Below, piece after piece: positions 14,194 through 50,079 of a stretch of DNA of 64,000 nucleotides. The translations under genes were made by a program, and so were the position numbers. Source of the stretch: Monocercomonoides exilis PA203 (taxonomy: Eukaryota > Protista > Preaxostyla); contig LSRY02000043.1 in assembly GCA_001643675.2 (NCBI GenBank), positions 744,001-808,000 on the forward strand, in the 5' to 3' direction. The first letter of the stretch is position 1. Every line of letters starts with the position of its first letter. A model generated the notes under the pieces. The model saw only the letters and a program-made list of their open reading frames with translations, was not told where the DNA came from and did not search any database.

Positions 14194-17100
14194 ATGTCAT
14201 CTTTTGTCACTCCAAAATCAACTTTATCCACCAAAGCTTGGCAGGATGGGATTATATCGAAGTGAAATTTTTTCATTTTAAATGTTATCAAACTATTTGA
14301 ATTCATATGTTTTTTCATTATTTTCATGTTTAACGAATAGGAAATTGATGATTTGAAAAAAAATATGAAAATAAAAATTTAATAAAAAAATTCATTTTTG
14401 GGTCATGATGAAAATAAATTTAAAATCAATTAATCGTCGCTCCAATTTGATGCATTAGCACCATCAGAAATCTCATCGCTTGAAGTATTATCATCTTCTG
14501 GAACAGAAATTTCACCTATATCATCTATATCAGGAACATCATTTACGATTTCTTCTTCTTCTTCAATAATTTCTCTCTCATTTTCTCTTCCATAGACGAT
14601 GTATCCCACAATATCCAAAAAAAAAACTTTCACCGTTTTTTTTTCACCATCCAAAAAGAAAGATAGTCTCCAATATATTTCTCCCTTATGCCATGTGTGG
14701 AAAAAAAGATCTCAGATGTGACCACATTCCTTTCACTGTATTTGTGCATGCCTGTGTAATTGGATCCACAAAATTTTTTGGATGATTCACTGTTTGATGG
14801 ATGTGGCCATGATCCTTCAAGCTGCTGTACGCACGCCATTCATCGCTCATTATTGTGGTTCCTGGATGGATATGAGATTTTATTAGAGGAACAAGTGTTT
14901 CGGCACTTCGGTCGGAACATGAAAAACAAATCTTCTTTTTGTATTTTACTTATCTTCATTTCTTTCAATTCCTCCAAATATCCATATCTGCTTTTTTCTT
15001 CTGCCTCTCTTATTCTTTCTTCTTCTCCAAATGCATTCGTCGATTTCAACTGTTTTTCCAAAACCACCTATCATAATAGAGTTTCGATGTATGATATTCA
15101 TGCACTCAACACGTAAAACACTACTCCAATATCCCACAATTAAAAAATCAACTTCTATTATTGAGCTTATCTGAGTTTGCATAAGCCCTTGCCATAGAAA
15201 TAAAACGATTAATAAGAATTTGTCAAGGCCAATTTTGTTATTTTCCAATCTAGTGTTTTTGAAAACTGTCCGTTTTTTAGTGCATTTGTACCACATCCAA
15301 TATCTGTAAGTTCATTTTTCATTCAATAAAGTCAAACTCTTATGGTGAATAGTACACTCTGGATGTTTGTCTTGTAAAAAACAAATTGATAAAACCACTG
15401 CCAAGCCTTTTCTTCACCAGTGAATGTTTTCAAAAGTTCAAAATTATGTTCCTTTTCATCTTCGGGATACGCCATTTACACTGAAGTTTTATTTGTTCAA
15501 ACCCATAAAACGCTTGTTTCACTCAAAATTCTATATTTTCATAAAAAATATACTTGTCATATTCTAGCATTTTTAAAAACATAAAAATTGTTAGAATTCA
15601 CAAACAAATATGTTTCTATAGAAAAATAAAAGTTTTGAGTACTTCGATATAATACCATAATGCCCAAAGCTTCGGCTGCTTGGGAAAGTTTGAAAAAAAT
15701 ATGCGGAGATTCTATTAAGCAAGTGATTATCTACCTCATCAACAGTCACAGAGATGCGTCTGAGGTTATGAACGAAGTTCGTCAAGAGATTGATGGTTTG
15801 TTATTTTTTTGTTTATTTGATATTTATGATATCTGACTATTCTTCAAACAAACTCTTCAAAAAAATTATTTATAATGTTATTGTTATTCATTCACTTTTT
15901 TCGATTTCGAAGAAAATTTAAAAATGTTGATTAGTGATTTGGCGATTATTTACAACACTGCGCAACAGCATACGCAAACAATGCTTCTGCAGGCTCTTTC
16001 TCGATTTTTATCATTAAGGCAGCTTTTAAATAATGAGTTCGACGTTACTCAAGGAAAGTACAGCTATGCGAAAAGTGTCTTGAAGCGCAACCAAGGAATA
16101 ATCGAGCAGCAGCAATAACCAAAAATTCCCGAATGCAAGAAAAGTTTTTTATTTTTTATTCTTTCAAAGTTCAAGTCACAATAAATTTCTTGGATTGACT
16201 GATGGAGAACGGCATGTCGGAAATCAATGGATGATAGAACATTCATCTGAATTATCATCCAGATTATCATTCAGTCAAAAGAAAAAAATCTCTTCATCGG
16301 AAGCCAAGTATCTGGATGAATCTGCATGGAATGATCTGATTTGTTATGGAAGTGAAACCACTGAACAGAATTTCTTTAATGAAAAAGTCCTGAAAGTTGC
16401 TGGAATTATGATTGAATCTCTTCCAGAGCAAGATAAAAAATGCATTAATCATTCGATGGAGAAGAATAAAAGCAAATCGTTTGATTTTTATTCGTAATTT
16501 ATTAATTAAACTCTTCACATTTCTTTTATCAGCAATAACGATTCCAAAAAACAATCCAAGCATCACCCTCAACACCAAATAATCACCATCCATAAAGATT
16601 TGAGTTTACAAAATAAAGCTAATTCCCAGTTACAGACTTCTGGCGTTCAAATGAAATATTCACAAGCAAGTGAAAAATCTTCAATTCATGATTTCAAATG
16701 AAGCATTTCTTTTCCTCCTCTTGTTCCTCATACGTTTTGGTCCACTTTTATAGAGACTAAATTGAGCGATCATCATAATATCGATATTCTGAAAAGCCAG
16801 CAAAGCAATTCGAAATGTTGTTCATCAGGTTCAAGTCAAACAAAAAAATTATCGGAAAAACGAGATAGCTTATCAAATGAAGTCTTCCCATGAAATCAAA
16901 ATCATTCAATACGGAAAGATTTTAATATTCCTTTTAAGCAGATAACAGTGAACGAACAATTTCAAAAATTGTCAGAGTCAAACCTTCAAAACCAGCATCA
17001 TTCATCGAAAGGAGAAATGAATGAAGATTCTTCTCATTGTCTCATTGTGATCAAATTGCAAAAAGAAAAGGTCTCGAAAATCTCGGAAATACCTGTAACT

Positions 17101-19445
17101 TCTCATCATTGCTTCAGTGTTTGTCTTCTTTAACAAGAATGGATTCCACAATTTTTAACAATCAGCAAACAGCAAACAAACTTTCTCACAAGGTCCTTCA
17201 CATCGCAAAGTCATTACATGCAAATGATTTCTCATCTTCACTCTGGAATCCAGATTTCATATTCGAATGGGATAATTATTGCAATCATGGACATTTCAAT
17301 CAACAGAATGTGTCCGAAGCATATTTAAAAATGATTGACCTGTTTAATAAAGAAGGATGCTCAAACATTGACACATTTACAATTCAAGTCTCACACAATG
17401 TGTTATGCAATAACTGTGGAACGTTCCACTCAAAGCAATACAACAATGTGCGAGATATCATTATTTACGATAGCTCAGTTATTGAAGGGTTGAGGAAAGA
17501 ATTTTCTAAAGAAAATTTTACAAAGAATAACAAAATATTTTGTGAACAATGCCAAGGATTTGAAAACTCGAAAAAATGGACAGAAATCAATAAATTTCCA
17601 ACAGTATTGACCATCACTCATGAAACCTAATATGATAATTTTTCAATCCCTCCCAAAAATTTAATATTCAAAATGGACAAGGATTCAAAAACAACTCATT
17701 GTGTTGAAGCAAATGATAAGCTTCATGAGAACGAACTTGTTTATGAAGGAGAATGCATATCATATGATCTGGTCGGTCAAATTTTGTTCAAACAACTTGA
17801 CAATTCAAACGGTCATTATGTTTGCGTGAGCAAAACCGTTTTCAATAAAGTTGATCATTGGTTCGTCTGCAATGACTCCACAACAAACGAAATATCACCA
17901 TCAAAATGGAGAGAAGTTTGGAGACATCTTTTTGATAAAGGTTACGTTCCATCCTTTTCTCTGTATCACAAAAACCAGACAATTGCAGCAAAAACATCAT
18001 TAACAAAAGGCGGAAAAAAAACTGATGAGAATCTTCTATCTGATAATTCTCCTCCAACATTTTCACATGCAGAACTTCTTGGAGCAATGAAAAGGGCAAA
18101 CGACATTTCATCGAACATTTTCCCCACCATTTCATCTTCGACATCTTCTCTCAACAAAAAAATTAAAAATCGAATAAAAGTCTTTTCTCCATTTGAAAGG
18201 CGTTTAATACTCAAATTAAAGACAACTCTATGGAAAGAATTCTCTATTGAAACTGGAATAAAAGTTTCATTGTCCAGTTTCTATAAATTGACTTCTCAAT
18301 TTGTTAGGGCAAAAAAGAGAACTGATGTTTGCGAATTGTGTCACAAATACGAGCATTTAATAATAAAGCAGAGATCACTTCAACAAGGGAAAACTCTTTC
18401 AAACGAAGAAATAAAGGAAATCAAATTTTTGAAGCTGCACAAAGCAATTGCTGATTTACAGCGGAGGCACTTTCATCTCTCAATCGATTCATTGAAGGAT
18501 TATGAAGTCGTTGTGTTATGGGATTTCAAAGAAAAGTGGAAATTGCCTCTTCGAAAAGATCAACTTCAACAGGAGTTTTACAACTATCATCAAGCATCTC
18601 ACCTCTCAATAATCACATATCAGGCTTCAAATTCAAACATATTGAAGAAAACATACAACTTTATTTCAAACAGCATCTCAAACGATCACAATTATAACAT
18701 TGACTGTTTAACCTCTGTACTGAAAAGGAAAGATTACGAAAATGTTACTTCTTTCAAGTTCTTTTGTGATTCTGGGCCTCACAATAGAAACAAATACATA
18801 TTACACTTTGTTCTGAGTCCTCAATCTTCGTTATTCGAAAAGGGCGAATGTGAATTGAACTTTTTCTGTGAACACCACGGAAAAAATGAATGTGATTCTG
18901 AATTCGGCACACTTGTAAATGTTCTTAAAAACAACATTGAATCGGAAGCACTTGTAAGTGAAAAGGATCTGATTGAATTGTTCAAGCGACATTTTGATAA
19001 TGAAAATAACGTTTCCAATCCTCAATGCAACAGCAAAACAAAAACACATTCAAATTACGAACACATGCCAAATAATTTCATTCCAAAAAGCAAAGTCATT
19101 CATAAACGTTTCTTTGAAGAACACATTCCATCGAAAGAAAATACACGATGTGCTTTTGTGATTCCTCATATGAAGAATTATTTGTTTTTTGAACGAAAAG
19201 GCAAATCAATTAGTGGATCAATTGTAGGACATTATTCACAACGTTCATTGATATCAATTAACGGATGCTCAATCAAAGAAAAAATACAAAAAGTTAATAA
19301 ACCAAATTACTCTATCAAAAATTCCCAAAATTCTGTTTCATTTAATTCTTTTTCAAATGTTTTGTATTATAATCGTGCTAATCTTTTGAAAAATGTTTCT
19401 TTATTGTTTGATGATTTCAATAAAAACTGTCGAGATAAAAAATGA
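14194..19445 (+). pseudogene. Sola2-like DDD transposase with inserted USP (peptidase C19) domain, copy 1; interrupted by a Merlin element and stops
   Basis: Exon 1 MSSFVTPKSTLSTKA|SAAWESLKK is restored by removing 14240-15672; GT intron at 15796. USP Cys box GLENLGNTC (Cys 17094), QQNVSE, His box NGHY (17814) and WFVCND. Transposase RTDVCELC, WDFKEKW, FCDSGPHNRN, HHGKNECDSEFG. Single in-frame TAA at 17628. Confidence 0.8.
14240..15664 (-). mobile_element. Merlin/IS1595-like transposon, frameshifted transposase
   Basis: TIRs GGCAGGATGGGATTATATCGAAGT / GGCATTATGGTATTATATCGAAGT; 8-bp TSD CAAAGCTT (14232-14239, 15665-15672); IGGFGKTVEIDE..WRRRK..RGR..WIFGG motif. Confidence 0.9.
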
Positions 19446-19454
19446 CCCAATTAT

Positions 19455-19582
19455 GCTGTGCATGCTTATCTTATATTCAATCGGAAGGATATAAAACTAG
19501 ACAAAACAAATTGACAGCTTAATTTGTCCGGACTTGGATACGTTGTTTTGCCTCCCAGGTGCACAGCTTTCATTTTCCGATT
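19455..19582 (+). ncRNA. Putative structured RNA (unknown family) 3' of USP-transposase, copy 1
   Basis: Conserved with 29201-29347 (minus) in blocks TGTGCATGCTTA, ATCGGAAGG, TCCGGACYTGGATACG, GCCTCCCAGGTGCACA and TCCGAT, with covarying stems between them. Confidence 0.65.
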
Positions 19583-19699
19583 CAAACAATTTCACATAAA
19601 TATAAATTCTTTTTGTAATTTTGGCTTCACCTTTCGATGACATTTAAATAATTAATTTTTAATTTTTTTAACTTTTTTAAAAATTTTCAATTTTAATTA

Positions 19700-19760
19700 A
19701 TTTTTAATTTTTATTTTTATTTTTATTTTTATTTTTATTTTTATTTTTATTTTTATTTTT
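19700..19760. repeat. (TTTTTA)n microsatellite
   Basis: Directly visible tandem units. Confidence 0.85.
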
Positions 19761-21813: not shown

Positions 21814-22767
21814 CGAACATTTATTTAGAAACAAACATGCTATAGTGAAATAAAAATTTTTTTATTTTTTCATTCCCATATAAAAAATTATCTGGATAAA
21901 AAAACCACCCTGAATGAATGTTAATCAATTCGAATTTTTCAAAATAGGAATAATAAATATATTATGTAATTTTATGTTGTTTCAAGATTAAAATGGAACC
22001 AGTCGTGAACGATTGTGTTACCGTTTTTAGCAAAAACAAAAACTTCTAAATTCCAAAATTGTGTATTTTAACAAAAGGAAGATAAAACTGACAAATAAAT
22101 AGATTCAATTGTTTGTTGAACGTTTATCTTCATGCTGAAATTCATAATAATTAGAAAACGATTCATTTTCACATTCGATGGAAAATGATCAAAAAAATTA
22201 AAAAAACTCACAAAAAATACTTTGTTAGTAAAAATAATAATTTAATATTTAATGTTGACGTGTTTTTGACTTCAACCTTCAAAACATTGTTTTATGACAA
22301 AAGCAAGACTTTCAGGCCACAATTGAAAAAAACTGGTTTTTCTCAAAAACACTGCCATTTATTTAAAATTACTGGGAAATCTTGAAATAAACAATTTATT
22401 TTGAAATATCTTTTTATTTCACAATTTATATAATAATCCTTTTATTCAAAATCAAAAATAGTTTTCGTCATTGAATCATCACAGAAATAATTCCTGTTAT
22501 GAAAAAAGTCAAAGGAAATAGTCACATGCTACAGATTGATCTATTCGACCGAACGATCTTTGTCGATTGATTGATCTCGACAAAGATTTGTAGATAACCT
22601 ATTTAATTGTATTTTGGGATATTTTATTAGAAAATAATTAAAAAAATAAAAAAGTTGTTTTTCATCAAAATTTGTTTGCAATTTTCAAGAAAAAAATAAA
22701 TTGAATAAAAAAAAAGAGTTTCGCAATAAAAAACATGAAATTATAAATTGGGTGTTTTTCTTTGATA

Positions 22768-23163
22768 CAGATATTGCATAAAATACCGGACATCGCACAA
22801 AGTACCGGACAAGATCGATATCTCAATAACTGTAAGAGAAATAATTCTGACAATTTTCCTCAAAACACACCTCATCAATACAAACTCACGTGACATACAA
22901 AACTTTCAAAGCAGCTTCATTTGTGCTCAGAAAAAATAATAATTAAAATCTCGGAGAAATAGGATTTTGAGTTTCTCCGAGATTTATAAAATTATTTTTT
23001 TCTGAGCACAAATGAAGCTGAAGTGAAGTCTTGTTTTTCAAATGAGTTTGCATTGACAAGGTGTGTTTTGAGGAAAATTGTCAGAATTATTTCTCTTACA
23101 GTTATTGAGATATCGATCTTGTCCGGTACTTTGTGCGATGTCCGGTATTTTATGCAATATCTG
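22768..23163. mobile_element. 396-bp fold-back MITE, CAG...CTG ends, TA TSD (Tc1/pogo type)
   Basis: About 105 bp of perfect inverted repeat, then imperfect symmetry to the centre (~22965); TA at 22766-22767 and 23164-23165. Confidence 0.9.
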
Positions 23164-23869
23164 TATCATTAAAAAATAGCGAAGTTTGATCATAAATTTT
23201 TTTCATAAAGGGATATGTTGAAAAGATTTATTTTATTCGAAATTGAATGCAAATATTGTTTAATATATTGTTATTATTTATTATTTGCTAGTTTTTGTTA
23301 GTTTCAGATTGTTTTTGTTTCATATTTTGATAAAAAACATAATAAAAAAAAAATATCGAAAATTAAATAAACATCATTAAACATGTTATCTTGCTTGAAA
23401 AGCATGATAATGATTGTTTCAATACTCAATAAATCAATTTCTTAAATGAAGAATGTTAAATAATGTATTGAAAAGAAATTTCAAAATGGATGTTGAAGAT
23501 CCAAATAAAAATGTTAAAAAAAAACAATTAGCACAAACACAAAAACAAAAATATGATAGGTATGCAAGATATTTAACAAGAAATTAACAGTTTGTAGTTC
23601 ATTTCGATTTTAAAACAAATAATTCAAAAAAGAACTTTTATAGATTTATTCGTCGAATTCTGTCCAAACAAGTTCATCTTTCTATTAATCTTCATTCTCT
23701 TCATTCGCTTAACAATCTTCTTCTCATATTCAACATGTTTCTTTTTTGGAAAATGCCCTCATTATTCAAAAAAAAATAATATTCATTAGCCAAAAATGAA
23801 GAAATCCGATAAAATGATGTGAGCAATGATAATGAAAAAGTGCAAAATGATGTTTTTGGATATTAAGAA

Positions 23870-26800
23870 GTTAGAAATGAACATGAAGAAGGAGCCTAAA
23901 TATCGGAAAAAGTCGATTGAGAAGAAAAATTATAAAAAATGTCGAAGAAGAAAAAGAAGAGGGTGAAGAAGAGTTTGAAGAGGAAGAAGAGGAAGGAGAA
24001 AAAGAGAACGAAGAAGAATTAGAAGGATAATGAGATGCCGCAGAAGGCAGAAGCGGAGAAGATGAATTAATAAGTATTGGGTTCATCGTGTTTCTCACGG
24101 ATTTGGAGAATTTTATGTCTTCGTTTAAGAGTTTTTGGGATTGGATGAGAGGAAAAAAATAAAGGTGAGAAGAGTGAAAGAAGGTAAAGAGGAGGAAGAT
24201 GAAGAAGAGGAAGAAGATTGAAGCTGCGACATTAACAGAGCAGGGACGAAAGTTGCTGGTGAAGATAAAAGAGCATCCTTTTTAAAATGAGGAAGTGTCC
24301 TTAGAAAAAAGACTCCGCATTGTTGAATTCTCAGGAATTGTTCCAGATGGCTGGGAGAAAAGAAAGAGAAGGAAATGTTTGTTGACGATGCTGAAGTGGA
24401 AGAGAACGAGTCGAAGGAAAAGGAATGTAAATTGAAGATGGAGAATTATTTGTTGTGAATGACGTAAAAGATGGAGAAGGAGAGGGAGAATTCGAAAGAG
24501 AAGAAAAAAGTTACTGAAAGGAGGTGATGCTTGTCTGAAGCTGATGTGGAAGAATTGCTGAGAATTAGTCTTTCTTTATCTGATAGGGAAGTTCTCCTCC
24601 TCATCCACTTGCTGTTCCTGATGCATTTATCGCATGCCAACAGAAGTTGTTTTAGCTCCATCAGCAGCAGAGTTTGAAGACCCATTCATATCCTGTGCAT
24701 TTGTTGTTATATTCCATGCAAATAAAGTAAACTGAGATTCAGATGTCTGCTGAATAGAAGAAGAAGATAAAGCAGAATGTGTGGATTGTTGTGATAATGC
24801 AGCGTTAACAACCTTCAGTCGCTGGATGAGAGAGGCAGAAATGAACATCGAAGGAGAAGAAGAAGGTTTCTGGACATGGTGTGTCTCGAATATGGCTGAT
24901 ATTTTGTGGAGCAAGTCCTTCTTCACCATCAACCAGTGATCAGCGGTGACAACAGCGTTGAGTGCGGTGCGCGTGGCCAGCGGACGAAGCAGCAGGCGAT
25001 TGGATTACGCGGCAGAAGGGCAGAGGGGCTGCGTGGAGAATAAGATGATGGAAGGTGTTGTGATGAAGGATAGCATGGACCGAGAAATGGAAATAGAAAT
25101 GATACAAGAGGTGAAAAGAGAAGGAATTGAAAGCACAGCAGATGAAGAAAAAGGAGCTGAAAGCGGCTTTGAAGGCAAAGTGATTACGATTGGAGTGAGT
25201 GGATGAAAAAGCATGAGAGGACACACGAAGACAAGAGGCACCCATGAAAACTTGAGAGAAAAAGGCAGAATCGAAGGCTACTCTTCTTTATGTGGCTGTT
25301 CAACGCGCAGCGGAGTAACCTTGTGTGTGTTGAATCTGTCAGTTCGAGCAGAGTTTCTCCGATGGATGGGACATATGCTGTTCTTTGAGGAGGAACCAAA
25401 ATTGTATTTTCTGAGGCAGACGGCAATATTTACTTGTCTTTGAAAAGGACAAACGAAGAAAACAAAAGCGGGTCAAGCAGAATATTCGCATTGATTGCAT
25501 ATGACTTTCTTTCCATTGCATACAAAGAGAAGTTATTTTCATCATTCTTTCTATTGATCTTGATCTGCACATCAAAAACAGTTCCAAATGTTTTTCTCTC
25601 TTCGCAGAACAGCTCAACTGTCTCTTACCTCGTCCCCTCCTTCCACAGCTGCCCTTCCTTCTCCTCTCCACACATTCATCTCCTTTCTCATGTTCTCCAC
25701 CAGATGTGCATCTTTCACTGCATCTTTTCCTCCGTAACTGAACAGCCTCGTGCCACACTACAGGCTCAGAAACGAGTTCGCATCATTCACTAATATTCCC
25801 CCTGTTGCACTGGCACGAGATGATGGAATCGTAATGGGCTTTGGAAGCTGAGGTGACCCGAGCTGGTTGAAAAGATGGGATAGCGCCTTTCCGAGTGAAT
25901 AAAGCAAAGCGGCGACTTCTTTCTGCCCTATCTGCTGCATCGACCGCACAAACAGCGTCTCCAGCCCTGACTTCTGTCTGTATTTTCTCCCAAACACAGA
26001 AGGATTTCCATAGTCATCCACTCCTCCTCCTCCTCCTCCTCCGTCTTCTCCATTTACATTGGTATAGCCTGTCTGGATAGACAAACTCGCTAATAAACAA
26101 GCCGCAGCAAACCCATTCGCAACAGCTATTCTGAGGAGTGCCTGCATTGTTCTGCCGAGTACTGCTCTGATGGCAGACAAGATAAGATGCCTTCGTGACA
26201 CAGAAACAGCCAATAAACTGTGGTTGCTGTGCCTTAGGCGCGGGTTCTGCCGGGCTTCTCTGCCTCCGTCTGAGCCAATTGCGTTCTCGTCTTCTTCTTT
26301 TGCATTGTTTTCCTTTGTAGGCTAGGCTCAAGGTAAGGACAGCGGTTGAGAAGTCTGACTGAGCTCTCCGCTGGAGATGGTTGAGGTGTGTGAGAAAGTG
26401 ACATGCGACTTCTTCTGATTGCTTTTTTGGGATGTCGATGAAAACATCTTTGGCTGTTTGTGAGGGAAGCGCAGGGCAGGGCGTGTGTATGAGTCTTCTT
26501 CTCTTTCTGTCGTCTTGTCTGTCTCATCGGCATTTGATGTGTCAGCTGATCGTGTTATATCCAAACAATCTTCGTCATCACTAACGTCACTAACGTAACT
26601 ATCATCGCTATCGTCGTTGTCTTCGTCTTCACTATCTTCTTCTGCTTCTTCAGTGTCTGTTGTACCTGCTCCGTTCACTCACTCTTTCCTCTCTTCATTT
26701 CGAATCAAATAGTTCATGTTCTTCCCTTTCCCTCTCGGCAAGAACTTTCTTTTTTGCTTCTTTGCCTTGCTTTCCTCTTCCTGAACGAGATTTGCATAAA

Positions 26801-28010
26801 GTCTAATATCGGTTGGATTGATTGTTGGAATGATCCTTCCAAGTATCTGCTTCAGTGTGTTCTCCTTCAACTTCGTAAGTGAATCTCTTTTCTCCCTGTC
26901 CTTCATCTCAGTTGTTATAAATGTTGCTTCGATTGAGCTGTTTTCTTTCATTTTTGTTGAGTTGAATGTATTTGAGGTGTCATATTCAAATACAAATCTG
27001 CTCTTTTTCGGTGTCTGCCGGCTGGCTTGTGTGCTTGTCTAAAATATCTTTGCACTGAGTTACTTGTCCAACTCCACATCTTCCTTTTCCTCCTCCTCAT
27101 CATCATCATCCACTTCCTAGCCATATTCATTCCCATCAATGTCACTTTTGCTTCTTCCACTCATTTCACTCGTGTCAGACACAGAAGAGTCAGATGCGAT
27201 GCTGCCTTCTGTCACACCAAGCAGCTCCAGCTCTCTCGAAAGCAGCTCACTCAGTACATCATACGTACTCATCATCGGACTTGTCTTTGATAGGAATGCT
27301 TTTCCTTTCGCTTTTCCTTTCCCTTTCACGCTCGCTTATCCTCTCCGCTTTTCACCTTTTTGCCTTCAAAACTCAAATTCATCTGGAGGAAGCTCGTCAA
27401 ACACAGAAATAATTCTTTCTTTTTTTTCTCCTTTCTTTTTTAACCCTTCTCATCTTTTTTCACTTTCTCTTTGTTTCCAAGTTTCCTCTAACTCTCCAAT
27501 GCAGCAGCTGGCTCCAAACGCCTATCATTCTGCGCTGTCTCATCAGTATTAGCACCTCCTTCGCTCTCCTTCCCCTGCTGACTCAACCACATCTCAGTCA
27601 TCATCCGCTTTCTCTTCATCTTCGGAGGCCTTCCTCTTGGAATAGCCAGCGGCACATGTTCCATCCCCACACGCAACAGCTTCTTCTTCTTGCTGTTATT
27701 ATTGTTATTGCTGTAGTTGCTGCTTCCTCCCATCTTGTTTGTCAGCCTTAGCACTTCTGATTTGAACTCTGGTGGAGCAATTCTTGAACCTGTGTGTGCT
27801 TTCATACAAATTGGCCGTTTGAATGCAGCAAGCGCTTTTCGCCTGTTGCTTCTTTTGAGTGTTCTTCCAAGTGCTGTTGTTGAAACACTCAGCAGTGAAA
27901 CAAATGAAGAAGAAAAGGATGAAGGATTCTTTGTCAAAGTACTTGAATTCTGGCATGACGAAGCTGGAAAACCAGCATTTAACGAAGCAGAAGAAGAAGA
28001 AAATAAAAGA
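23870..28010 (-). pseudogene. Cargo: long frameshifted host-like low-complexity gene
   Basis: Chain of overlapping broken minus-strand ORFs (S-rich, D/E-rich, K-rich); no domain recognised. Confidence 0.5.
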
Positions 28011-29200
28011 CTTGGAAATAAAATTAAAAAATTAAAATAAATAAAATGCCTTGAAGGGCAAACATATAATAATTTGCTTTCTCTCCATAAGAAACGGGAA
28101 ACAGCAAAATTCTACTCAGGATTCAGTTGGATAACAGTGAAAGAATTTCGAATAGGAAAAGAGAAAAAGCATTCGAAATATTAAAAAGAATCTTTCATAA
28201 GTTGCAAAAAATAAGCAAAAATAGAGTATCAAACACAAAATTTCAAACCTTTTTCTTCATTGAAATCCCATTTCAATTTTCAATTATCTTATTGATCTGC
28301 AATTTGCAGAAATGCTTATTAATTGCATTACGACAATATTTATATGTTGTCGAAGTGTTTCATGAGGTTTATAACGATTTCTGCAAATTTCCACGTTATG
28401 AAAAAGTTTTCATGATCATTGAGATCTTTTATTAAAAGCAATAAGTTTTTTGTTGATCTGTTTGTTTAAATTCATTTCTCTCAAATAAATATTTATTGCT
28501 TTTAACGATAATTTTAGTAATATGGAAAAAACTGAAATTGATTTCAAGGAGAAAATGCTTGTTTATTCGAATTTGAGTTTTTTTCGAAAAGGAAAAAATA
28601 TCAGTGAAATGAAAAAAAATTGCGTAAAAAAAAAAACAATCGTTCATAAACCAAAATGACATAAAAAAACAAAAAGAACTTCCTGATATCGATCATAAGT
28701 AAAATTGAAAACGGAAAGAAATTTTCTTATCAGATTCTGAAACTTTCAAAAAAACATAATTCAATCTCATTATCATAAAACAATCACCAAATATCAACTT
28801 AATATCAACAATTTTGAACAATAAAAAATATAAAAAGAAATTGTACTATTTCAATAAATTCATGGTATCAAAGACATTTCCAAATAAAAATGAATATTTT
28901 TATTAATAGTTCAAGTACTAACTTGTCAATTTCCCCTCTGTTTTCCATCCACTCTCCCCTTTCTGAAATTTCTCAAACTTTGACTCAAATAGATCAAATC
29001 CAACAAAAAAAAAAGACAGACACAATGATGAAACAACATTTCACACTCTCAGCTATTCTCCTTTCCTCAAATCTAGTCCAAAGATCAATGAATTCCTTCT
29101 CAATTCTATCTATTAATGAATCCCGATAAATACAATTATTATAGTGACAATAACCAATTACATAATAGGGATTGTATTTGGACAAAAATCTCAAGAAAAC

Positions 29201-29347
29201 AATCGGATTCTAACTATTGTGCACCTGGGAGGCTGTTCGTCGTATCCAGGTCCGGATAAAGCATCCAGGAGGCTGCAGCATCTAATACGAACAGTCATGT
29301 CCAGCACCCTTCCGATAGAGTGCCAGCTAAGCATGCACAACAACTAG
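29201..29347 (-). ncRNA. Putative structured RNA (unknown family) 3' of USP-transposase, copy 2
   Basis: GC-rich island; 14-bp closing stem with G-U pairs only in transposase-sense orientation; same conserved blocks as 19455-19582. Confidence 0.65.
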
Positions 29348-29471
29348 TTTCTTAAAAAAAAACACCATTAATACAATATTAAGATTCATTTAAAGATGTA
29401 GAGTCAAGAAAAAGATCAAATCTTCTTGAAAGAAGATCTTGAGAAGATTGAGAAAGAAGAGAAGAGTTTGA

Positions 29472-32400
29472 TTATGTGAAATCAGAGTTGAAGGTCTTTC
29501 TTGAACGTTGAATTTTTTCTTTCATTGTCGAAGATTCGAGGGCAACCAGAGAGCGTTGAGGAAGATATCCAACAGCTGAAGCAGAGACAAATGAGCCTTT
29601 GCGCTCAAAATACAAGTAATCTTTCATGTGGGGAACTGACAATGATGGCCATGAGATTTGTTGAGATGGTACGTACTCTTCAAAGAACCTCTCATGCACA
29701 CACTCCTTGATAGATGATGACGATGGGGAGTTGTTTGATGATGACGTTGAGAAAATGTTTGATTGAGAAGTTGAAGAAGCAGATGTCGAAGTGTTCATAT
29801 TGTTTTCGAAGAAGCTGATCAAATCATGAAGTGTTGTGATGTGTTCTGTCGAAAGATTGTTGTCGATTGCATTCACTAACGCACCAAATTCACTATCACA
29901 AATGTTTTTTCCATGGTGCTCAGCGAAGAAGTTGAGTTGAGTATTTTTCTTTTTGAGAAGTTTGGATTGTTTAGAGAGGATGAAGTGAAGAAGGAAGCGA
30001 TTTCTGTTGAGTGGACCAGAATCGCAGAAGAACTTAAAAGTGTGAGTGTCTGAGAAGAAGTGTCTTTTGATCACAGATTCCAGACACTCAATAACAAATA
30101 TGTGATCATTTGAGAGGCAGTTGGAGAAGAAGTTGAATGTTCGTTTTATTTGTTGATTATTAATTTTTTGAAGAAAGATGATCGTAAATTGAGTAACCTG
30201 TTGAAAGTTGAAGAATTCCTGTTGAAGTTGGTTCTTTCTGATGGGGAGTTTCCATTTTTCTTTGAAGTCGAAGACAAAGACTGCTTTTCCCTCTTTCAGA
30301 TTATCAACAGTTGATTGATAATGTTTTCGTTGCATTTCTGCAACAAGTCTGTGTTGTCGAAGAAGTTTCAGAGTGTGAAACTCTGCAGGAGAAAGTCCAT
30401 TTTTGTTTTGTGAAGATTTGAGTTTATTCTCCAAATAACTCAACTTCTCACACATGTTACAGAGATTTGTGCGCCTTTTTTACTTTGGAGAAGTTGGTTG
30501 TGAGTTTGTTGAAGTGCGATAATGAAACTTTGATGTTTGTTTCATCTGTAAACTCTTTCCATAATTTCGTCTTAAGCTTGAAGATTAATCTCTATTCGTT
30601 GGGATAAAAGATACCCGTTTTTTTTCTTTTTTCTTTCAAAGCTTCCAATTCATTATTTATTGAAATTAAAAAAGATAGGAAACGAATTGAATTTGAACGA
30701 TGAGGAGGTGTGATGAATGCAGATGATGATAATGATATGCTATTTGAAGTGTTTGAATTTGATGTTTCTGAAGAAGACGAAGAAGAGGAACCACCGAATT
30801 GAATTGTTGAAAACGTTGGATTTGTTTTTCCTTTTGTGTTGAAAGAAAGGGAAGGAGTGTAACCTTGAATGTGAAGATTATTCCATGAAGAACTCCATTT
30901 ATCACTATCGAATTCAGTCACTTCAGCATCATTGCAAATGCACCATTTGATTACGTTTCTATTTATCTTTTTGACAACTGCAATGTAGTGTCCGTTTTGA
31001 TTATCCAAATGTTTAAACAAAACTTGGCCAACAAGATGGAAAATGATCGTTTGCTGATTATCCTTTTGAAAATGTTGAGCATTTTCTTCTGAAAATCCTT
31101 TGCAGAACGTGCGCTGGATAGCACGATCAGTTTCAATCAGAAGCGTTCTCGATGGTACAGAACTAGCAGAATCAGTGCATTCATGACAGAGGGCAAGCAC
31201 TTCTGGAAATGAAACTATTTCCTCTTATCTCTCAGCACAGCATTTATCCTTACACACATCGCAAAAGACACTATTCTTTCCTTCCAAAACTTCTGTGGTA
31301 AAGAGAGATGATAGACCTTTGTGAGGAGAAGATGAATTAATTATTACGTTGCAACAAATTTCAATGATGTGTGATGTGATATTTTGGCATTTTTGACATT
31401 TGAGATGAGTAATGATAACTGGATTGAAGGAATCCTTGTTTATCAACTCATCTTTTTGAAGAAGTCGGTGAAGATTGTCAAATGCCTCAGCTACGTTTTG
31501 CTGCTGTCTGCTACCATATCCACAAAAGTCTTCCCATTTGTTGATCAGTGATGGGACCCATGAACGCACTGCCATTCCATCTTTCGCCAATTGTTGACAA
31601 ACACTCAAAACACGAGAAGACATTGTTTTTATTGCTGTTTGCTTTTTAAATAAGAATGTTTTTGAATAGTTATTGAAGAGAAACATTGAAGAAGAGAAGC
31701 CAAATAGCATGTGTTGCCTAAGTTTGGCAATCCTTTTGCTATTTGTGATGATGTTTTCGAAGAATTTCATGAATTTGAAGAAGTTTAAGAATGAGAATGA
31801 TTTTAAATTGAATTTTCTTTAGCATTCTTTTTTGAAATATTTTTTGAAGAATTATTTTGTTGACATATTTCATTGTTTGGAGATTGAACGCTTTGTTGTT
31901 GATAAGTTATAGTATCATTCTCTTTAGAAAATGATGAAAGAAGATTTTGAAATGCTTGAGGTGGAATAAGATTGGGTGAAATGGTATATTCAACTAATTG
32001 ATCACTCACAAACACATTTCCATTTTGAAATGATGAAGAATTTAATTTTTCTTTCAATTTTTTTGTGATTGAAATTTGCTGAAGATGATTTTTGTTTTGT
32101 TCTGATAAGTTTGTGAATTGGAATTGGAGATGGAGGAGAATAACGTTTGTGACTTGAATTTTGATTTTGATTTTTTGTTGGACCACTTTCTCTCCTAATT
32201 GGAGTACTGATTGGGGCATCAACAGCTTGAGAAGAAGAAGAATTTGAAGAAGGAGAATTTTTTTATGAAATGGTTTTTGAATTTTTATTTTGTTGAGATG
32301 ATGTTGAATAAGAAGAAGAAGATTGTTTTTTTATCTGAAGCAGAATTTTCTTTTATTATTTCTTCATCCCACTCTGCTTCGTTAATGAATCTCGCATAAT

Positions 32401-33245: not shown

Positions 33246-35014
33246 GTTTTGTGTTTATTCAAAGAAAAATTGACAAATAAAATATTCAAAGAGCTTCCAA
33301 AAATGAATATTTATTATTCAAAATTATCCTTCTAAAATTTGCTGACAAGTCAAAACTGACATGAATCTTATTTCATTTTCCACATCATCTGAAAATAATA
33401 TTAACATTAAACAATAAAATAAAAAATTTATTTAAAAATTGTTAAAAATATCATTTATAAAACAAAAAATCTACATTTTTGTTTCAATCATAATTTTATG
33501 AACATTATAGTTATTTTTGTGTTTATTTAAAAAAATGACTTAAGTCAAAATAGGATTTTTTTAATAATTATTTTTTTTGGAAAATGATAAGTTTTTGCAA
33601 AAATATTTTTTTTCAATAGTGACAAATAAAAAACAATGAAAATTTATTGCATCGATTGAAATTTAAAAATAAAGATTGATTTTTTAAATAAATGTTTCTG
33701 ATAATATTCATTCTGAAAATTGTTCGATTTGATCTTATTGATCAAAGAAAGATTTTAATTACACGGGAATTTGCAGAAATCGTTTTTGCGTATATTTATC
33801 TCTTCTTTATATCATTTACACCATTTGGAACAAAAAGATTATCGATTCTGCAAATTCCCGATCAACATAAAAATGAAAATTCGAAATGGGTTTATGGTCA
33901 AATTAAAAAATTTGATTTTTCGGGAAAGAAACTTTGTTTTTTGAAAGCAAAATTCAAATATGATTCATGTCTTCTTTTATGCTTCTTCTTCCTCGATTTT
34001 TTCAAGCAAACTGTTCTTCATTTCCACCACAAAATAGGAAAAAAAGCATTTATAATTTTTAACCTCTTAATTATCATAATTGTTATTACACCTACAATTA
34101 TGACATCCTTCGTTTCCTTATCTTTCTTTCTTCTTCGCAAATTTCTTCTGCTCCGCAACATTCATCTTTCGACAAGCAAACACAAATTATCTTCTTTTCC
34201 ATCATCTTCGCCAGCGCTTTTATCTTCCCCGAATCCACTCATTCGTTGAATGATCGAGACGATGCTGCTTTCTCCTTCCTCTTCCTTCTCCTTCCCCTTC
34301 TCCACCACCTATCTTTCAACCAATCCCTTCTCCTCGTCATTCCCATCCATTACCACCACCTCTCATCTCCTTCAGCTTCTGGCAGATCTGATGCTTTCTT
34401 CTCAATCTGGCCAGCTCTTCTTCAGCATAGCCATGTTTGTGAAAGAAGTGTAGAGGGAAATGCGGATGAGAAGAGTGGTGAAGAGGATACTAAGGAGAAG
34501 ATGGAAAGAGGGGAGAAGGGAGGGAAGAGAGGGAAGAGGAAGTTGGATGAAGAAAGAAGAGGAAATAATATGGAAGGAGGGCTGTATGGTGTTTGAATAG
34601 AAGAAGAAAATGAAGCTGAAGAGGATAATATGAGAATGGATGAAGGAAAAAGAGAAGAAGAATAAAAAGAATGAAAGATGAGAAGAGAAGAGAAAGCCAA
34701 GAAAGAAGAAAAAGAAGAATCCAAAAGAAGTGAAGAAGAAAGGATTTGAAAAAGAGAGCAGTAGATGGAGAATGAAGGAACGAAGAGCGATGAGCTGCCC
34801 GCAGAAAAGGCAGTCATCGAGTATTGTATGCAAGTACTCACCAACATCGCGAGAATTGGAATAACAACAAATTCTATATTGATCCTGTGCTCCTTGGGCT
34901 GGTTGTGGAATTGATGAGGTTTGCCTTATCTATTTTTCTTTCTATTTATTTGATCAATTTAATTATATTCTTTTTGAACTTTCATTTACATATTCTTCAA
35001 ATATTAATTGTAAT

Positions 35015-47266: not shown

Positions 47267-50079
47267 CTAAATGCGGCTTGGGCTAAAAGAAATGTTCGAG
47301 AATGAGTTGCCTGAGCTGCCTGAGCTGCCTGAGCTGTGTGAGCTGCCTGAGCTGCCTGAGCTGTTAGAGATGACTGAGCTGCCTGAGCTGCCTGAGCTGC
47401 CTGAGCTGCCTGAGCTGCCTGAGCTGCCTGAGCTGTGTGAGCTGCCTGAGCTGTGTGAGCTGTGTGAGCTGCCTGAGCTGCCTGAGCTGTGTGAGCTGCC
47501 TGAGCTGTGTGAGCTGTGTGAGCTGCCTGAGCTGCCTGAGCTGTGTGAGCTGAATTCATCATTTTTTGGAGAAATGAGAAATTGTGAATCGAGTGATTTG
47601 GATTTGCTTTCACGGTTATGAGTGCTATCTGCTTTTTTGCTATCTTCGAACTCATTATCTATTGCTGCATCGTCACATTCTGTTGTTTCATTGTAAATAT
47701 CATTCTCAATTGATGCTTCGAATCTCCTTTCAATGAGATCCAGCGATTGAATTCCAGTTTCTTTTCTCAATCCACAATAAAACATACGGCTTGCTGATTG
47801 TTTGGAGAATATCTTGTTCTCAGTGGAAATATCTGCTTTCTTCCATTCCATCGAATTGTGATGATGAAATGGAGCAAAGAGAATATCATCTTTATCTCTT
47901 CGCCAACATAAATTCAACTTCATTGACTGCACACATAGCTTTGGAAGAGTTTTTTTTCTTAAAATCGGAGAATATGGAAGAAAATGTCTCATAACATGAG
48001 CATTTTCCATTTCCCATTCTGAGGAACTTAATCTTCTGTCGAAGAAGGATCTAAGTTCCTCGAGTGAAGAAATGTCTTCACAAGAGTTTTTCAAAACTCT
48101 TGTGAGGAATCCAAATTCGGAATCCACCTCGCTTTTTCCATGCCCTTCAGCAAAAAAGGAAAGCGAGGTGGATTCAAAGAGAAGATGAAGGGAGGATGAT
48201 GAGTGTAGGATGAAATGGAGAAATGCTCCATTTCTAAAGTGTGGTCCACATTCTGACCAAACTTTCAGATATGTGAAATGCTTGGAATTTCTTTTTGTAA
48301 TGATTGATACGACTGTTTGAAGACAGTCAATAGAATATCTGCTATCTTTCGAAAGTACTTCAGAAAAGAAATGAAAGCAATGTTTCATCTTTGTTTTGTT
48401 TTTGATGAAATGGGCAATTATTCCAAGGTGAGAGTTTTCTTTTTTTTCATAATAATCTCGAGAAATCTGGGAATAATAATAAGGAAGTGCCCAATTTTGT
48501 TTGAAATCCATAATTAAAAGAATCTCATTTTGTTTCAATTCATCGAGATCTTTGTGAAATGAAGTTCTTTGAATTTTTTGTATAATGAAGTGCTTGTTAA
48601 GAGTGTGCATTTCTTGAATTTCTTTAGCTTCCAGATTTTTCACCTTCTTTTTGTTAATTAATTGTTTTCTTCTTTCACATAAATTACACACATCAGTTCT
48701 TCTTTCCGCCTTTTCTATGTTTTGCGAAAGTTTATAAAAAGTTGACAAACACATTTTTACGTTTGTTTCTTTCATCATTTTTTTCCAAACGCACTTTTTC
48801 GAATCAAATATAATTCTTCTTTCATTCTCGAACCAGATTTTATTATCTTTAAGTTCAGTTTTTGTTTCTAAATCATTCCACACTTCTTTTTCAAACAGAA
48901 TTTTGTTGTATTTAACAATATTTGAAGAATTCGAATTGTTTCCATTTTCATCTTCTTTATTTGATTTCAATAAATTTATTCTGCAAAAATCTTCAATATT
49001 TTTTTCTATTATTGCTGATGTTGTGGATTTAATGAATTGATCAAAATTTAATTGTTGTATTTCACAATCATCTGAAGTGATTGTATTTTTTTCTTTCTTT
49101 TCATCCGATGAAGTGTGTTGATCAGTTTGCGAATGATGTTGGGGAGTTGAAGAATTTTTATGAGATAATATATGAGAAGAAATAGGAGGTGAATGAAATG
49201 AATTTTCTTTTTGAGATAAAATGTTAGATGGTGTTGTCAGTGGATTGAATGTTGTTTGAGAAGAAATAGGAGGTGTATGAAATGAATTTGTAAATATCGG
49301 CATCAATAATGGAGATGTTGCATTTCTTGATATTGACAAAAGCAAATCGTCATTTTGTTGATTTGTATTTATTCTTAATAATTTTTGACTATTGGTTTTA
49401 TTGATGTGTGGTGAACATTTGTTATCCTTTGTGACTGATTTAGACAGAAATTCAATATCATCTTCACTTAAATCTAAAGTTTTGGATTTTTTACAGATCG
49501 TTTGGCATTTGCTGCTATCATCTGAATTTCTTTCCAACCACCATTGGCAAAATAAAAAATTGGAAGTGCTTAGAGCTATAAAAATGTTATTGAATAATAA
49601 ATAATTAATAAAACATACGCTGCTTACACGTTGGAATGGAATGTTTATCCGGCTTTTTTACTTCGTAGTTATGTTTTTTCAAAATGCGATTTGCATGCAC
49701 CAGATTATTTTTGGAACAATTCCAACCTGCTTTAAGCAATTCTCGAAAATCAAACACTTTCAGAAATGTTTGAAGGAGAAGAATTCGATTATTTTTATCT
49801 AATAAATCATATAGAAATCCAGCCTGCAAAAGAATTTTATCAACTTTATCTTATCATTAATGGAAAATATAAACGAAAATTTATTTTACCAAATATTATT
49901 CTACGCATACCATTAAAGTCTTGAACCAAATAACTAAAAATTTCTTTTCCTTTTTCCGTATGCTTGAAATAATAAGAAAGCAACTGTTCTTCTTCATTTT
50001 CTGCGTAATATTTAAGAAAATCTGATAGATTGTGGCATATCTGAGACAGTCGACCAACGGAATGATCTTTAATTGTCAT
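47267..50079 (-). CDS. Sola2-like transposase, copy 3 (no USP domain; probably 3 exons)
   Basis: Exon 1 MTIKDHS...QDFNG|GT, exon 2 ILLLQTFLKVF, then a 756-aa open exon with RTDVCNLC, MDFKQNW, WSECGPHFRN, GHGKSEVDSEFG. Confidence 0.8.
47304..47552. repeat. 9-bp minisatellite (GAGCTGCCT/GAGCTGTGT) encoding an SGS/SHS tail of transposase copy 3
   Basis: About 27 tandem units with two alternating variants. Confidence 0.95.

Follow-up and report, generated by a model that had tools for sequence, protein, structure and literature searches.

Two transposase genes in a stretch of the genome of the gut protist Monocercomonoides exilis PA203 are each followed by a similar short segment, raising the question of what this segment is and what it could do for the element that carries it. 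The stretch, here called the window, is the whole 64-kb piece of DNA that was analysed, and searches were extended to the complete genome of 82.3 Mb in 101 contigs. The sequence-only reading of the window had placed the segment behind both genes, at positions that we found to be correct on re-reading (Table 1), and had interpreted it as a structured RNA encoded on the transposase-sense strand, belonging to a new family and tied to a transposase lineage that bears a USP domain. These parts of the interpretation hold; one conserved hairpin that it included does not. As possible functions it had suggested a ribozyme, a 3'-end stability element or an RNA cofactor.

Fold, covariation and sequence constraint of the module

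The module is 130-165 nt long and folds around a three-way junction. Helix P1 closes the junction and is joined there by hairpin P2 and helix P3, and P3 encloses a further long hairpin, P3a. A conserved U-G pair closes P1 at its junction end. The modules of the two window copies, A and B, share 77% column identity when aligned, with their differences concentrated in the stems, and P3a is degraded in copy B of the window specifically.

Table 1. Positions of the module, its structural parts, the associated genes and nearby repeats in the window
Feature	Position	Strand	Remarks
Copy A UCH/USP exon or ORF	17037-17630	+	Pfam UCH 8.9e-9
Copy A 590-aa ORF with DDD core	17673-19445	+	stop TGA 19443-19445
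Copy A module	19455-19582	+	
Copy A P1 5' strand (GCUGUGCAU)	19455-19463	+	starts 9 nt past stop codon; covariation
Copy A junction J1/2 (UGCUUAUC)	19463-19470	+	UGCUYA near-invariant in family, common to metagenome relatives
Copy A P2 hairpin	19471-19494	+	8-bp stem, 19471-19478 with 19487-19494
Copy A P2 loop (AAUCGGAA)	19479-19486	+	5' half of pseudoknot
Copy A junction J2/3	19495-19501	+	family consensus GGACAWGA
Copy A P3 domain	19502-19550	+	P3 stem, 19502-19509 with 19543-19550
Copy A P3a, GACA/UGUC	19513-19516 with 19525-19528	+	short in A; at least 10 bp in other subfamilies
Copy A invariant single strand (CGGACUUGGAUACG)	19529-19542	+	inside P3 domain
Copy A J3/1 (CCUCCCAGG)	19551-19559	+	followed by P1 3' strand, up to 19567
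Copy A pseudoknot 3' half (UUCCGAUU)	19575-19582	+	8 bp with P2 loop
Microsatellite behind copy A module	19655-19750		(T5-6 A)n
178-nt inverted repeat, arms	22728-22905 and 23026-23203		87% complementary, arms 120 nt apart
Repeated region beside copy B	26500-28250		collinear in about 11 other copies
Copy B inverted repeats	28264-28311 and 33846-33893		
Copy B inverted repeats, two pairs	28264-28426 and 33731-33893		share the word ATTTGCAGAA
Copy B module (subfamily B)	29201-29347	-	covariance model score 165.5 bits
Copy B P1	29347-29334 with 29223-29210	-	
Copy B J1/2	29333-29327	-	
Copy B P2	29326-29319 with 29308-29301	-	loop 29318-29309
Copy B P3	29294-29287 with 29240-29233	-	
Copy B invariant single strand	29254-29241	-	
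Copy B J3/1	29232-29224	-	
Copy B pseudoknot tail	29207-29202	-	
Copy B transposase gene, broken	29352-32222	-	pieces 31803-32222, 31225-31770, 30592-31200, 29472-30455
Normal stop (TAA) of the copy B family	29354-29352	-	4 nt before P1
Copy 3 tandem coding repeat	47300-47560	-	CAGCTCAGG and CAGCTCACA units
Copy 3 (USP-less)	47951-48841	-	no module

Compensatory changes, claimed earlier for three stems, are found in P1, P2 and P3 in both of the larger sets of copies that were examined. RNAalifold recovered the three helices from a MAFFT alignment of 17 copies, with compensatory changes at 20 of the 31 pairs. On 29 diverse copies the initial structural model leaves 87% of cells paired, compared with 32-46% when the partners are slid against each other. 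A revised model, lacking the helix P3b and with P3a lengthened to 10 bp, raises this to 88.1% (35-46% slid) and contains 300 double-change cells against 51-85 in the slid controls. All eight pairs of P2 are doubly changed, with 95% of cells paired; double changes are likewise present at 8/8 pairs of P3 and at 9/10 pairs of P3a, where 91.5% of cells are paired. The case is much stronger than the two window copies had suggested.

The helix that was removed, P3b, is the supposedly conserved hairpin TRTCC/GGATA, in which we observed solely one-sided changes and mismatches. A scan for additional covarying columns identified the neighboring 'variable hairpin' as a genuine helix, and P3b was dropped in favor of an extended P3a in which UAUC pairs upstream with GAUA and not downstream with GGAUA. 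The extension pairs differ between subfamilies, being GACA/UGUC in A, AAUA/UAUU in E, AAUG/CAUU in F and GAAA/UUUC in G. With UAUC paired upstream, CGGACYUGGAUAYG is left as an invariant single strand of 14 nt. Together with UGCUYAGC, GGACAWGA and CUCCCAGG it makes up four junction strands containing about 40 near-invariant nucleotides. Two linkers in this set that had been singled out as invariant in the sequence-only reading, UGCUYA and CUCCCAGG, are at least 90% invariant across the family. ACYUGG of the 14-nt strand could pair with CCAGGU in J3/1, as it does in the predicted minimum-energy fold of copy A; both sides never vary.

A pseudoknot between the P2 loop and the tail beyond P1 had been predicted from the window copies and is retained by eight subfamilies, three of which show compensatory changes. 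In subfamilies A, B, D and F the partner of the P2 loop lies 6-9 nt past P1. Both sides have changed in G (UGUUGGA/UUCAACA) and K, which have UGUUGG paired with UCAACA, and in H (UCGGUU/AACCGA). The pairing is weak in C, absent in E and unclear in I and J. For copy A the pseudoknot duplex has an energy of -9.9 kcal/mol, a value equalled by 0 of 300 shuffles.

Several observations support a structured RNA on the transposase-sense strand. G-U cells number 129 and A-C cells 36, which favors the transposase-sense strand and backs the earlier preference for RNA over a DNA cruciform. Stops occur in most frames of both strands, and the indels that distinguish subfamilies, for example a 13-nt gap in A, do not preserve a triplet phase; a small coding exon was rejected on these grounds. 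The family had not been recognized on first reading, and no match to Rfam 15 (4227 models, including ribozymes, xrRNAs, riboswitches and snRNAs) was obtained for the whole window at gathering thresholds; at E<=10 the modules of copy A, copy B and a metagenome relative (L084, described below) gave chance-level matches alone, far below gathering. ARAGORN detected no tRNA-like gene in the module. The module is a previously undescribed structured RNA domain under strong constraint.

The strength of this constraint is evident within subfamily B, for which about 54 copies were compared with the window copy. Identity to that copy is 97.7% and 98.4% for the two conserved module halves, mostly 78-97% for windows of the ORF and 77-78% for the immediate flanks. 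The module is therefore kept more strictly than the transposase gene and must be important to its carrier. In a set of 43 distinct B sequences, the small number of stem positions that are polymorphic have C or U facing G, and the P3a loop varies freely. Conservation starts at P1 and stops about 10 nt after the pseudoknot, where a U-rich run follows in subfamily B.

Copies, host element and relatives

The module is abundant in M. exilis. Its 3' signature motif (GGAYAYG, a gap of 4-14 nt, CTCCCAGGTGCA) occurs 86 times genome-wide, compared with 0 occurrences of the reversed control. A covariance model, R1, built from 17 copies, yielded 142 matches in the 82-Mb genome at a threshold of E<=0.01. 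The copies sort into at least 11 diverged subfamilies, labelled A to K. The majority of the 142 belong to one young subfamily, B, the type of copy B, with 95-97% identity, and the remainder represent at least ten further subfamilies (A, C to K). At one locus two modules lie in tandem about 30 nt apart (L003:1469-1776; G000:C1:333987-334294, minus strand), the second without the usual P2 loop and without a pseudoknot partner. A single chimeric copy, L008, combines the 5' part of the first with the 3' part of the second tandem module, as if produced by recombination between them.

At all 21 loci whose upstream sequence was read, covering 11 subfamilies, the module immediately follows, on the same strand, an ORF whose product is homologous to the copy A protein (31-51% protein identity). 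The earlier proposal of a link to the USP-bearing transposase lineage is well supported. In the nine subfamilies with intact ORFs, P1 starts 4-16 nt past the stop codon, and 13-23 nt separate the end of the stop codon from a GCAUGCU anchor (A 14, B 15, C 23, D 14, E 17, F 14, G 16, I 13, J 14). In most M. exilis subfamilies about 9-11 nt lie between the stop and the conserved inner part of P1, and 18 nt in C; the sequence between stop and P1 is not alignable across subfamilies. We found no ORF downstream of the module, and a role in translating a downstream ORF, as an IRES, was rejected on this basis. Extension of the protein by stop-codon read-through was likewise rejected: the frame closes after about 20 codons, and its register relative to the module varies by subfamily because spacings of 13-17 nt are not congruent modulo 3. 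The host uses the poly(A) hexamers AAUAAA and AAAUAA (PMC8767320). Behind the module such hexamers occur at no fixed distance, from 8 to >700 nt. Microsatellites of the form (T5-6 A)n lie 50-130 nt after the module in subfamilies A, C and F, not in B (the window copy A, L002, L003 and L011), and may be just AT-rich background.

The element that carries copy A has the features of a DNA transposon. Homologues of its 590-aa ORF were limited to M. exilis proteins and one metagenome protein. Three aspartates (D, D, D) and an HGK motif are invariant in 36 homologues, and the best PDB matches of the predicted fold (pLDDT 85) are IstA, Hermes and other DDE transposases. Pfam returned a weak DUF7869 signal only. 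On the strength of the predicted structure, the copy A protein is a DDD transposase with an RNase H-like fold. Copy A is flanked by inverted repeats beginning GGGTG, with ATAT on either side. Sola2 elements are characterized by short terminal inverted repeats and by an AT-rich target duplication of 4 bp, AWWT (PMC3627910), and the apparent ATAT duplication and GGGTG repeats of copy A fit this description. The module sits 1.5 kb from the end of copy A.

Copy B, whose transposase gene is broken, and its module are bracketed by two pairs of inverted repeats that share the word ATTTGCAGAA. They may delimit a unit of 5.6 kb or lie inside a larger element; other copies are collinear for 2.7 kb past them, and the adjoining region is also repeated. 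Between the two transposon copies lies a 178-nt inverted repeat, which may be a hairpin-forming small element. A third, USP-less transposase copy had been described as lacking the module, and we found none behind it. The core of this copy 3 continues into a long coding stretch of tandemly repeated CAGCTCAGG and CAGCTCACA units that encodes a Ser/Gly/His-rich tail, with no RNA module behind it.

Outside M. exilis, the module was recognized behind two metagenome relatives. Protein P0006 on contig L084 (JGI sample 3300010163) shows 38-40% identity. Behind its stop, a closing helix and UGCUUACC precede a long hairpin; an 8-bp helix around a further hairpin, then UUCCCAGG and finally the closing strand complete the layout. 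The L084 module has a folding z-score of -5.0; R1 missed this type of module, which was recognized by eye and by folding. Contig L089 from the same sample encodes P0161, 54% identical to P0006, and has the same module layout. The two modules covary in P1, P2 and P3a. The presence of the same architecture in both relatives indicates that the module is older than the species M. exilis. Their called stops lie 30-58 nt before the module, and the tight stop spacing may therefore be lineage-specific. L084 and L089 come from an AT-rich eukaryote whose transposases are the closest relatives of the USP-transposase lineage outside M. exilis. R1 and reading by eye revealed no convincing module behind the more distant homologues on L085 (Blattamonas; 27-29% identity) and on L086, L087 and L088 (three metagenome contigs; 27-32%); the module-less copy 3 is 33-36% identical. 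Metagenome scans with the protein pattern and with the exact motif found nothing.

Possible functions

We tentatively propose that the module is a cis-acting 3'-UTR domain of the USP-transposase mRNA, most likely fixing the fate of its 3' end. The module would form the start of the 3' UTR of this mRNA in Sola2-like DNA transposons and would act in cis on its own message, at or just after translation termination. A terminating ribosome covers roughly 9-11 nt of downstream RNA. At the observed spacing it would come up against P1 or unwind it. The domain probably decides the fate of the transcript 3' end. It could block decay, or it could define a 3' end where a canonical poly(A) signal is not conserved close by, and could in this way set the transposase dose.

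The junction strands raise a broader alternative. Some 40 invariant junction nucleotides are more than a stability element or a protein site usually needs and would better fit a catalytic or ligand-binding core. That the module is an active RNA component of the element, whether as a self-cleaving ribozyme of a new class or as an RNA bound and required by the transposase, is accordingly a possibility we take seriously, albeit one we hold to be less probable than its negation.

As a new class of self-cleaving ribozyme, the module would use its junction core to cut the transcript just after the transposase ORF, freeing the message from cargo read-through or limiting transposase output. Hammerhead, HDV-like and twister ribozymes are known from other mobile elements. 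The compactness of the pseudoknotted multi-helix junction, its many invariant single-stranded nucleotides, the conserved U-G pair at P1 and the lack of a conserved poly(A) signal behind the module are all consistent with such an activity, but no Rfam ribozyme model matches even at E<=10 and no cleavage site can be inferred from the sequence. Moreover, five helices in 130-165 nt exceed the size of most small ribozymes, and a 3' cut would leave an unadenylated message. We consider self-cleavage rather unlikely.

Binding by the transposase, on its own message or on a processed fragment, is a comparably doubtful and, in our estimation, unlikely role for the module. By analogy with bacterial insertion sequences and non-LTR retrotransposons, such a partnership would serve autoregulation, cis-preference or assembly. 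It would account for the strict co-inheritance of module and transposase lineage down to 31-51% protein identity, the absence of the module behind homologues of 27-36% identity and its position immediately 3' of the ORF, and the invariant single strands could provide a protein-binding surface. Against it, the transposase has no recognized RNA-binding domain, and the module, 1.5 kb from the end of copy A, is placed unlike a TnpB-type guide. No guide-like variable segment matching the copy A ends was seen by eye; matches between P3a and the end sequences were 6-7-mers, a chance level at which we rejected the guide hypothesis. A TnpB or Fanzor partner was rejected as well, since a search of the genome for their zinc ribbon (PF07282) gave no match.

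An independent small non-coding RNA gene (a Pol III gene, for example) that travels with the transposon and has a product acting in trans appears very improbable. Although the sharp edges of conservation, from P1 to about 10 nt after the pseudoknot, with the U-rich run in subfamily B and T-runs 10-45 nt downstream in several subfamilies, resemble those of such a gene, T-runs are common in this AT-rich genome and absent in H and K. No internal promoter boxes were recognized, ARAGORN was negative and no stand-alone copy occurs among the 21 loci of 11 subfamilies or the approximately 54 B-type loci.

Readings in which the module is not RNA (a DNA cruciform or protein-binding site, a small coding exon) or is a recoding signal are already largely refuted and deserve hardly any weight: structure a few nucleotides past a stop is the geometry of read-through pseudoknots, and the module starts 4-16 nt past one, but in DNA or on the opposite strand the G-U pairs would be A-C mismatches, and the stops, non-triplet indels and closure of the frame after about 20 codons argue against coding and recoding.

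Comparison with known systems

The putative 3'-UTR domain shares features with several known RNAs. The 3' UTRs of non-LTR retrotransposons such as R2 are structured and bound by the element's own protein. Like the M. exilis module, they carry a conserved pseudoknotted fold after the ORF that is co-inherited with it and in which structure outlasts sequence drift. They have no similarity to the module in sequence or model, however, and the M. exilis element belongs to the cut-and-paste DDD transposons, having terminal inverted repeats and an ATAT target duplication of 4 bp. We know of no RNA template step in elements of this kind. Flavivirus-type xrRNAs are similar in being 3'-UTR three-way junctions in which a hairpin loop pairs with a strand just 3' of the closing helix. 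In contrast, the module has no Rfam xrRNA match and forms its pseudoknot with the first hairpin; by eye, the 5' flanks of copies A and B showed no complementarity to J2/3 or J3/1 that would correspond to the second xrRNA pseudoknot. A U-rich internal loop between G-C pairs, which together with an A-rich tract downstream characterizes the ENE-type triple helices that stabilize transposon RNAs, is not present in any consensus helix.

The ribozymes of mobile elements (hammerhead, HDV-like, twister, pistol, hatchet) share with the module a junction, a pseudoknot and many invariant unpaired nucleotides, whereas the M. exilis fold is larger, has different core sequences and matches none of their models at E<=10. 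The omega RNAs of TnpB and IscB and the bridge or seek RNAs of IS110/IS1111 are, similarly, structured RNAs beside an enzyme gene with which they are co-inherited. The M. exilis enzyme is a predicted eukaryotic DDD transposase and not a RuvC or DEDD nuclease, and its module is internal to the element, 1.5 kb from the copy A end, with no evident guide. Retroviral read-through and frameshift pseudoknots also lie a few nucleotides past a stop codon, and the P1 spacing of 4-16 nt is in line with the 5-10 nt of read-through signals; unlike these, the module is not followed by a conserved frame, the extension ending after some 20 codons.

What is novel is the RNA family and its setting; the mechanism is still a proposal. 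A literature search returned no conserved structured RNA described for eukaryotic cut-and-paste transposons, which have been described, as far as we found, as systems of a protein and DNA ends. A fold kept by compensatory evolution that is also the best-conserved part of subfamily B points to an RNA-level step important to the success of the element. With its rich covariation and about 40 invariant junction nucleotides, the motif is a candidate for catalysis, exonuclease resistance or protein binding. Conserved structured RNAs have so far been found in retrotransposons, viruses and bacterial insertion sequences, and if the module is indeed an active RNA component, its carriers would be, as far as we found, the first family of eukaryotic DNA transposons to depend on a structured RNA as an obligate partner.
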